A DNA stretch of 64,000 nucleotides, taken from Macrostomum lignano (Eukaryota). Positions 3,001 to 6,000 of the stretch are shown one piece after another (position 1 is the first letter of the stretch; each line of letters starts with the position of its first letter). The notes beneath the pieces are model-generated. The model was not told the origin of the DNA. It made no database searches and saw only the letters and a program-made list of their open reading frames with translations. The DNA is taken from NCBI GenBank assembly GCA_002269645.1, contig NIVC01000022.1, positions 186,001 to 250,000 of the forward strand. Reading direction: 5' to 3'. A program made the position numbers and the translations under genes.

Positions 3001-6000
3001 CTCAGCAACTGAGGATCTGGGGGGGGGCTCAACAACTGAGGATCTGGGAGGCTGGTCCATCAACTGAGGATCCGGGAGGCTGGCCCAGCAACTGAGGATC
3101 TGGGAGGCAAGGTTAGAATTCCAAAGCCAAGGCCTTGGGTTCCCAGAAACACAGGCGATCTGAAAACTCACTGGCAATCAGGACGGCCAGTACAAGAAGA
3201 GCCGACTGCAGAAAGAAGAAGCCAATGTTGAACTCCAGGATGTCTGAAAATAAAGTTCATATTTTTATTGTCACAAACGTAGCAAGCAAACTGGAGAGAA
3301 CTGGAGAACTGGACACTCACAGATTTCGTCAGCTGAGAAGTGCTCTCTGAACAGGTTGCCTGGTTCGCCGTTCCTCAGCCACATGTCATAGTGCAGCAGC
3401 AGGCCCTGCTCGGCGGGTGGGGATAGGAGTGAGTCATGGGCTGCGACAGGCAGACAGAAAAATACTGAGACAGACAGACAGACAGACAGACAGACAGACA
3501 GACAGACACTAAGACAGACAGACAGACAGACAGACAGACAGACAGACAGACAGACAGGCAGACAGGCAGACAGACAGACAGACAGACAGAAAGACACACA
3601 GACAGACAGACAGACAGACAGACAGACAGGCAGACAGACAGACAGACAGACAGACAGACAGATAGACAGACAGATAGACAGACAGACAGACAGACAGACA
3701 GACAGACAGACAGACAGACAGACAGACAGACAGACAGACAGACAGATAGACAGACAGACAGACAGACAGACAGACAGACAGACAGACAGACAGACAGACA
3801 GACAGACAGATAGACAGACAGACAGACAGACAGACAGACAGACAGACAGACAGACAGACAGACAGACAGACAGACAGACAGACAGACAGACAGATAGACA
3901 GACAGACAGACAGACAGACAGACAGACAGACAGACAGACAGACAGATAGACAGACAGACAGACAGACAGACAGACAGATAGACAGACAGACAGACAGACA
4001 GACAGACAGACAGGCAGACAGACAGACAGACAGACAGACAGACAGATAGACAGACAGATAGACAGACAGACAGACAGACAGACAGACAGACAGACAGACA
4101 GACAGACAGACAGACAGACAGACAGATAGACAGACAGACAGACAGACAGACAGACAGACAGACAGGCAGACAGACAGACAGACACACAGACAGACAGGCA
4201 GACAGACAGACAGAAAGACACACAGACAGACAGACAGACAGACAGACAGACAGGCAGACAGACAGACAGACAGACAGGCAAGCACCCCAAGTCACTCACG
4301 CTGCGGGCCATGCAGTTGGAGATGACAATGAACCACCAGCGCTCCCTGGCCGACTTGAACTGGTACTCCTTGGAGTCGCAGAGCAGGGCCGTGTTGTTTT
4401 CAACCGAACGGCACAGTCCGGAGTCCTTGGACAGCCGGAAGATCTGGTATTTCAGAATTTCCAGGTCGGCCTCCTTCTGAGTGCAGGACTAAAAAGCAGA
4501 AAGAACATTAAATTCAATGCAATTATCAAATTTTCCTATATTTACTTGGAAAATGAAATTCGCATACCAGCTCAGTGTTGTAGACACTGGTCCACAGGTT
4601 TGGCTTGTCCCAGTATAACAGCATGCTTTGTGTCAGGTAAGACTAGGTTGAGAAATTAAACAATGAGATGAGTTAGTATATATTACAGACCTCAGTTTCA
4701 TGGCCAGCATTTGTGGTTTCTAATTCTATTCAAAGCACTCACCACAGGATAACGAATGGTAAACTTCAAGGAGCCCTTGTCTGGCAGAAAGCAGAATCGC
4801 GTAAGGAAATGCCAATTCTGTCAAATTCAGATAGTATTGTCTTATGTTGATTCAAATATAATGTGTAGAAATCAAGTTCTCTGGTTAAAATCTTTGTTGG
4901 AAATTCTCTAGTAAACAGCTGCATTGGCTTGCAGTCTGTGGGAAAGTGCAGCTTGGAACTGCAAGCTGCCTGCTTGACTTTTTATCAGGCTGATTAGTTT
5001 TATTTTCTATGGCCAAGTGCAGATCTGCAGCAGTGGCTACTGCTATAGTGAATGGTACGAGCCAATTTTCCCTTTATCAACTCAGTTATCAACTAAAATT
5101 CCAACATTCACAAGAAAGTAAAAAAATCATATAGCCAATTTGTTAATTTTGAAGTGTTTTTAACACTTTACAACTCGGCGGGTGGGGATAGGAGTGAGTC
5201 ATGGGCTGCGACAGGCAGACAGAAAAATACTGAGACAGACAAACAGACACTAAGACAGACATACAGACAGACAGACAGACAGACAGACAGACAGACAGAC
5301 AGACAGACAGACAGACAGAGACAGACAGACAGACAGACAGACAGACAGACAGACAGACAGACAGACAGACAGACAGACAGACAGACAGACAGACAGACAG
5401 ACAGACACTAAGACAGACAGACAGACAGAGACAGACAGACATGCAGACAGACAGACAGACAGACAGACAGAGACAGACAGACATGCAGACAGACAGACAG
5501 ACAGTCAGACAGACAGACAGACAGACAGACAGACAGACAGACAGACAGACAGACAGACACTAAGACAGACAGACAGACAGACAAGACAGACAGACAGACA
5601 CTGACTGACAGACAGACAGACAGACAGGCAAGCACCCCAAGTCACTCACGCTGATGCTGAGTGATGAGTGATGCTGAGTCACTCACGCTCACGCTCATGC
5701 TTGTAAAATATTCAATAGTATATTTTTTCAAAAAAACTTGATTGATTCCTAAAATTTTCTAAGAAACAAGGTTTCCCACCCTTTTACTTAAACAGTCCTT
5801 GTTAGATAAACCAATAGTATACTATATTTGGACCACAAATAGTAAAATCAAAGTCTAGGCTTAGGCATAGCATAGGCAGGGATAGCCCACTTTGGTAACA
5901 GACATCTTGATAATAGAGACTGATAATAAAGAATATCCACTTCAATAACAGACTAGTATAGATAATATAGATAAATGAGATAATACAAGTTGAAAAGAAA

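Follow-up and report, generated by a model that had tools for sequence, protein, structure and literature searches.

The 64,000-nucleotide (nt) stretch of Macrostomum lignano DNA analyzed here, positions 186,001 to 250,000 of the forward strand of contig NIVC01000022.1 (assembly GCA_002269645.1) and hereafter called the window, carries on its minus strand a gene of the TMEM145/GPR180 family, and intron 1 of this gene contains a near-complete copy of intron 4 of the same gene, hereafter called the block. The gene product contains the TMEM145_N and GPR180-TMEM145_TM domains, both above the Pfam cut-offs, with scores of 102.8 bits for PF21892 and 137.3 bits for PF10192. A protein database search revealed that its closest relatives are Macrostomum lignano proteins, and the orthologues carry the name TMEM145. 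The translation of the exon model was an exact match to the M. lignano protein A0A1I8HQ92 of UniRef (P0060), read-through tail included, and because of this exact match the block could be placed in intron 1 (7860..4818, minus strand, between exons 1 and 2) and its source identified as intron 4 (4299..3406, minus strand). The latter begins with GT at 4299 and ends with the acceptor CAG at 3408..3406, the copied portion being 4299..3409. The initial annotation of this DNA had assigned the gene to TMEM145 and had named the same two introns as recipient and source, which the exon model bears out.

Extent and uniqueness of the intron 4 copy

The block (5649..5174, minus strand) has 476 nt, from the G of GT through GAG, and comprises a unique 5' flank of 23 nt (5649..5627), a (TGTC)n array of 395 nt (5627..5233) and a unique 3' flank of ~60 nt (5232..5174). 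Read on the minus strand, positions 5653..5166 are cagc|GTGAGTGACTTGGGGTGCTTGCC-(TGTC)n-...CCTATCCCCACCCGCCGAG|ttgtaaag. The initial annotation had described this block at 5174-5653, with the boundaries cagc|...|ttgtaaag, the same orientation as intron 4, a shorter microsatellite and an exon match of 4 nt, and every element described was found; the array of intron 4 in the window measures 810 nt, against 395 nt for that of the block. At the 5' end, block and intron 4 share 47 nt without mismatch, made up of four exon bases (CAGC) and 43 intron nt, while at the 3' end they share 68 nt without mismatch, ending exactly after GAG. The four exon bases are the last of exon 4 (4488..4300; CAGC at 4303..4300) and are the only exon bases in common with the block; no base of exon 5 (3405..3321) was copied. 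The block lies in the sense orientation, as does intron 4, and the source is intact, 1.35 kb downstream.

Arrays of (TGTC)n/(AGAC)n are common in the window, where they occur at six places, and the evidence of homology is therefore limited to the flanks. The 23-nt donor-side and the 41-nt acceptor-side unique strings each occurred twice in the 64 kb, in intron 4 and in the block, with 0 occurrences expected by chance. When the search was extended to ~116 kb in total, covering the window, two paralogous loci (L001 and L002) and a second copy of the gene (L003), the strings were found in one orthologous copy in L003 and not in L001 or L002. Self-BLAST of the window revealed intron 4 and the block as the sole dispersed repeat with non-satellite flanks, besides the terminal inverted repeats of a transposon. 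The copied flanks had no Rfam match to a known RNA gene, such as a mobile snoRNA, and neither terminal repeats nor a target-site duplication were found at the block.

The paralogues P0003 (L001) and P0001 (L002), which are ~54% identical, have an intron at the identical codon boundary (...N|GL...). Because the paralogues share this position, intron 4 is old and hence the source, and the block is the copy; the reverse relation, a newly gained intron 4 derived from the block, was ruled out since proteins only 54% identical have an intron exactly there. No analogous intron copies were found in L001, L002 or L003. The annotated proteins P0059, P0060 and P0062 read CMARS|GLLLHY, the paralogues likewise lack an extra residue, and all seven acceptors of the host gene are CAG or TAG, so that the acceptor in use is the CAG at 3406. 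For the same reasons GAG was rejected as the true acceptor, the annotated proteins having no extra Q. The last 3 nt up to the 3' splice site in use are therefore missing from the copy. The identity from splice site to splice site that had been proposed thus holds in part: the copied intron starts at GT and ends at GAG, but four exon nt are included and the real acceptor CAG lies 3 nt further. Neither an exact start at the G of the 5' splice site nor an exact end at the G of the 3' splice site was found, the limits being off by 4 and 3 nt, respectively.

An empty site in a second copy of the gene

The full-length NCBI protein PAA48594.1 (P0059) belongs to the same 90% cluster as the best match, and its contig is NIVC01004110.1 (L003). 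This contig holds a second copy of the gene, with three amino-acid differences in 423, ~1% divergence in the coding sequence and ~6% substitution divergence in the introns, in keeping with the duplicated chromosomes that the sequenced line carries (PMC5730564). Alignment revealed that L003 is collinear with the window across intron 1 apart from the absence of window positions 5696..5166, and the comparison with another gene copy, suggested in the initial annotation, hence uncovered an empty site in NIVC01004110.1. This site reads ...ATATTTTACAAGCAT|TTTGTTAAAAACAC..., with the break point also given as ...ACAAGCAT|TTTGTTAAAAACAC; across the junction L003 has GCAT|TTTGTTAAAAAC, where the window has GCAT(531 nt)TGTTAAAAAC. 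Each flank of the block occurs once in L003, inside its own intron 4.

The C in gactcaCtcc and the TTAG landmark of the array are common to the block and to intron 4 of the window, and are not found in intron 4 of L003. Moreover, the block showed 0 differences from its source in 87 non-array nt, whereas ~6% substitutions separate the two gene copies. The absence of differences, together with the window-specific variants, indicates that the insertion took place in the lineage of the window, well after the two copies split, and from intron 4 of that lineage. The same two observations rule out a precise deletion in L003 in place of an insertion. Searches for a further copy of the gene, or for the filled site in an independent assembly, were negative: P0008, P0060 and P0061 led to no record, and a neighbouring open reading frame taken as a handle gave no match. 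Between the two gene copies there were no other templated indels on the kb scale; the remaining indels were local events of 8-39 nt, one indel of 202 nt and one transposon.

The 202-nt stretch (L003 4640-4841) belongs to intron 1, is absent from the window and has no local duplicate. The transposon is a non-autonomous DNA transposon of 821 nt in intron 1 (window 6622-7466, minus strand) and is present only in the copy of the window, the corresponding site in L003 (5183-5190) being empty. It is flanked by an 8-bp target-site duplication (TTGTGAAC) and has imperfect terminal inverted repeats of ~60 nt made of CCATTTCGGCGACAAGTCATTTCGGCGACAA units, and a short internal open reading frame with a Cys/His-rich, PHD-like motif. 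L003 also carries a partial duplicate of the 3' part of the gene (11200-13700 and 20200-22500; the exon 8 region plus satellite), which is annotated as a separate gene of 188 amino acids.

Structure of the insert and its junctions

The insert of 531 nt consists of a 47-nt filler, the 476-nt tract GTGAGT...CCGAG and an 8-nt filler. The donor-side filler (5650..5696, minus strand; GAGCGTGAGCGTGAGTGACTCAGCATCACTCATCACTCAGCATCAGC) is not in the empty site, and its last four nt, CAGC (5653..5650), are those of the end of exon 4. The acceptor-side filler (5166..5173, minus strand; TTGTAAAG) is an imperfect copy of the adjoining target TTGTTAAAA. On the left, the target ends with GCAT (5697..5700, minus strand), which is present in the empty site and so does not come from the exon; its right edge is TGTTAAAAACA (5155..5165, minus strand), where 0-2 T bases were possibly lost. 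The alignment of the window with L003 revealed no target-site duplication.

The scrambled snippets (GTCACTCACGCT) that had been noticed at the donor-side junction are present. Within the 47-nt filler there are an 8-nt direct copy, AGCGTGAG, of donor positions -3..+5, a 13-nt direct copy, AGCGTGAGTGACT, of donor positions -3..+10, and two inverted 7-nt copies (TCACTCA) of the donor region, and the filler is predicted to fold as two small hairpins (z = -2.05). When the greedy coverage of the filler was compared with that of shuffled sequences, the observed value was attained in 42 of 500 shuffles; as this test was uninformative, the argument from the snippets rests on the 13-mer, which is otherwise absent from the window. 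The string formed by GAGCGTGAG and CGTGAGTGACT would be expected from a slip-back on AG microhomology at the junction. Three times in the donor-side region GTGAG directly follows AGC, and the final junction is CAGC. Identity at the switch points amounted to 2-4 nt on the donor side (AG/CAGC) and to none at CCGAG|TTGT. An exon 4 carry-over of the GCATG that precedes the filler, considered since the exon has TGCATGG, was ruled out because GCAT is pre-existing target in the empty site. Likewise, CAGC could not represent a target-site preference of reverse splicing, since the target ends in GCAT and CAGC was thus inserted.

The array of the source contains in-register variant units (12 TATC and 9 TGCC), none of which occurs in the array of the block. 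The latter has four TTAG landmarks and several out-of-register indels, and matches the source only in the first five units and in the last few units near TTAG. This pattern indicates that copying of the array was probably discontinuous and prone to slippage, with only its two edges being copied, or else that the arrays diverged fast. The arrays of intron 4 are in fact very unstable, given that they measure ~3.1 kb in L003 (7021-10150) and 0.8 kb in the window (3468-4277); their variant units, TATC/TGCC in the window and TGTTTC/TGCC in L003, point to a very fast turnover.

Repair of a break in intron 1 as the probable origin

The insertion is young, lineage-specific and templated. It very probably arose when an error-prone alternative end joining closed a break in intron 1 and picked up intron 4 sequence, and the junctions show what such an entry by error-prone break repair would be expected to leave. 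Filler at both junctions, the lack of a target-site duplication, and direct and inverted snippets of the donor region all support break repair, and template-switch repair, which the initial annotation had listed as an alternative, agrees with these junctions. The repair may be classed as a synthesis-dependent, microhomology-type alternative end joining of the kind done by polymerase theta. The hallmarks of POLQ-type repair and of synthesis-dependent microhomology-mediated end joining (SD-MMEJ) comprise inserts identical to the flanks, complex, overlapping inserts produced by repeated cycles of priming, extension and dissociation, snap-back inserts in reverse complement, and microsatellite slippage (PMC5068794, PMC4912351, PMC2943611). 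For the template, we favor, with modest confidence, nearby DNA in cis as the best explanation. The direct orientation and the position of the source on the downstream side of the break represent the geometry needed for flank-templated synthesis, and AGC before GTGAG in the filler, together with CAGC at the final junction, fits a template in which exon 4 was still attached.

Under this explanation, a double-strand break would have occurred in intron 1 between GCAT and TTTGTT, in the lineage of the gene copy of the window. After long resection, the upstream 3' end would have been templated on the exposed complementary strand downstream of the same break, priming repeatedly at the junction of exon 4 and intron 4. 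Aborted rounds would have left AGCGTGAG and AGCGTGAGTGACT, and fold-back rounds the two copies of TCACTCA, before one long run proceeded through CAGC|GTGAG into the (TGTC)n array. Slippage and a jump inside the array would have allowed only its two edges to be copied, and ~60 nt beyond the array synthesis would have dissociated at ...CCGAG; a short patch templated by the flank would then have preceded joining to the other end. That the tract starts 4 nt before the donor and ends 3 nt before the acceptor might be due partly to the unique intronic flanks of the array being only 23 and 63 nt long, and partly to chance.

Several observations weigh against this explanation. Templated inserts of POLQ are mostly <25 bp, and their templates lie no more than tens of bp from the break (PMC5068794), while the tract found here has 476 nt and was templated 1.35 kb away, only the two fillers being near the typical size. 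The chance that both ends fall 3-4 nt from splice sites would be, as a rough figure and not a computed one, ~0.5% if the segment is centred on the array and ~1e-4 for random segments. The acceptor-side junction has no microhomology. AGC could just as well stem from the end of the intron itself (...CCGAGC|AG), linked to its start, and the evidence of exon carry-over is consequently a single base, the C at -4. Finally, the filled site was seen in one assembly only.

The coincidence with the splice sites could be accounted for if the template was RNA. It is tentatively conceivable, as a looser version of what the initial annotation had proposed, that excised intron 4 RNA, either linear with a trimmed tail or as a 3'-5' circle, was copied to DNA and captured at the same break by end joining; the copying enzyme might be a retroelement reverse transcriptase or polymerase theta itself, and the splice-site limits would be the ends of the RNA. 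Such a template accounts for the start at the G of GT and for the end within the last few bases of the intron, limits that were not shaped by splicing selection because the patch sits inside another intron. Filler at both junctions is equally expected of captured cDNA, and GAGC|GTGAGTGACT in the filler fits the junction of a tail-trimmed circle or concatemer over 14 nt, compared to 13 nt for the exon junction. There are also precedents for the steps involved, since intron circles with trimmed tails are known from yeast and human (PMC10996645), breaks have been patched with RNA-derived sequences, intronic ones included, without target-site duplication (PMC5110952), and polymerase theta is able to reverse transcribe RNA (PMC8195485). 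On the other hand, CAGC at the final junction matches exon 4 in four of four bases, whereas a circle junction would match in three of four (C at -4); in a linear intron GTGAG would not follow AGC, yet the two are juxtaposed three times; and the copy lacks the last 3 nt of the intron. Excised introns are short-lived and intron circles rare, the insert bears no poly(A) or other RNA signature, and the case is a single one. We retain cis DNA as the favored template, and the remaining explanations are considerably less probable than either of these.

Canonical intron transposition, in which an intron 4 lariat would be reverse-spliced into the intron 1 pre-mRNA (or into R-loop DNA), reverse transcribed and returned by homologous recombination, is very unlikely. 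The sense orientation, the common transcript and the limits near GT and AG would all suit it, two events were recovered with a yeast reporter (Lee and Stevens, 2016, as cited in PMC10996645), and intron pairs of Oikopleura and Mycosphaerella have been so interpreted (PMC3443670). It predicts, however, the empty site plus an exact intron, and what was found includes 47 and 8 nt of locally templated filler; the four bases before GT are inserted and not target, the final 3 nt of the intron as spliced are absent, and the array was not faithfully copied. The reinsertion of an excised intron by reverse splicing and reverse transcription, as the initial annotation had put forward, is contradicted by these fillers, by the inserted CAGC and by the missing 3 nt. 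An assembly artefact, with the block not in the animal, is slightly less probable still: 48% of the window is tandem repeat, M. lignano assemblies are difficult and redundant (PMC5730564), and the sole other copy compared (L003) lacks the block, but collinear unique sequence lies on both sides, the junctions have biologically typical templated filler rather than a simple mis-join, the array of the block differs from that of the source, and the copy without the block is a second locus diverged by 6%, not the same locus. Least probable of all is a dispersed repeat or an introner-like mobile family with its own splice sites. The six (TGTC)n/(AGAC)n arrays of the window might suggest such a family; against it, the unique flanks are confined in the window to the block and its source, and in L003 to intron 4, with none in L001 or L002 over the ~116 kb searched, terminal inverted repeats and a target-site duplication are lacking, and the intron position is ancient.

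Comparison with known systems

The insert resembles the templated insertions of POLQ and SD-MMEJ repair (PMC5068794, PMC4912351, PMC2943611) in the single break, the absence of a target-site duplication, the intact source, the overlapping direct and snap-back inverted junction snippets, the microsatellite slippage and the short imperfect copy of the flank at the other junction. It differs in that typical cases are <25 bp and templated within ~10 bp, compared to 476 nt from 1.35 kb here, and in that the tract begins and ends within a few nt of the splice sites of a single intron. In class 2 templated sequence insertions, a break is patched with a copy of another region that is argued to be RNA-derived (PMC5110952). 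These share with the present case a size of some hundreds of bp, the lack of a target-site duplication and of poly(A), end-joining junctions and an intact donor, and intronic sequences are among their known donors. However, the donor here is the same gene, 1.35 kb off, and not a distant locus, the patch is approximately one whole intron instead of an arbitrary fragment, and an RNA origin is only a candidate.

With intron transposition (PMC3443670, PMC10996645) the insert shares that a resident intron was copied almost completely, in sense, to a new transcribed site in the same gene; it differs in that its junctions are unclean, its limits miss the exact splice sites by 4 and 3 nt, and the recipient is an intron, so that no new intron of the coding sequence resulted. 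The intron-gain cases of Daphnia are similar in that foreign or ectopic DNA lies at a repaired break within a gene; in those cases the new introns are in exons, often with short flanking direct repeats, in contrast to the intron recipient and the absence of a flanking direct repeat in the present case.

Consequences for the host gene and for intron gain

The patch is expected to have no effect on the protein because it is removed together with intron 1. The block retains a consensus donor (GTGAGT) and a pyrimidine tract but ends in GAG, a poor acceptor; a nested splicing of the block within intron 1 may be possible.

The spread of spliceosomal introns is still argued largely on indirect evidence (PMC3443670). 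Most candidate events of intron gain lie in exons, where selection for splicing can itself yield an appearance bounded by splice sites. Here, a near-complete intron copy lies outside such selection, another copy of the gene preserves the empty site, both junctions can be read, and the near coincidence with both splice sites is the remaining point of interest. If the template was DNA, the event would represent an unusually long and distant flank-templated insertion, and would be a warning that a copy bounded like an intron need not derive from RNA. If it was intron RNA, the insert would be rare direct evidence of intron mobilisation through break repair, with a footprint free of selection and with mobilisation by break repair instead of reverse splicing and homologous recombination. 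Two classical models of intron gain would then be linked in an animal that can be tested experimentally: transgenesis exists for M. lignano, whose genome is repeat-rich and duplicated (PMC5730564).

Other features of the gene and the window

The other exons of the model matching A0A1I8HQ92, all on the minus strand as are exons 4 and 5, are exon 1 (7956..7861), exon 2 (4817..4743), exon 3 (4642..4568), exon 6 (3243..3172), exon 7 (2705..2556) and exon 8 (2175..1649). A private mini- or microsatellite array was found in nearly every intron of the gene. The tandem repeat content of the 64-kb window (48%, by TRF) is far above the genome average of 15% in M. lignano (PMC5730564). An open frame at 19690-20029 (plus strand), which appeared coding-like, had no relative in the protein database and lies beyond a 16-nt satellite, AAGACAGGTAGAGAGG. 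This satellite forms two arrays in the window, at 115-1570 (1.5 kb) and 17594-19659 (2.1 kb), which are in opposite orientation and 16 kb apart.

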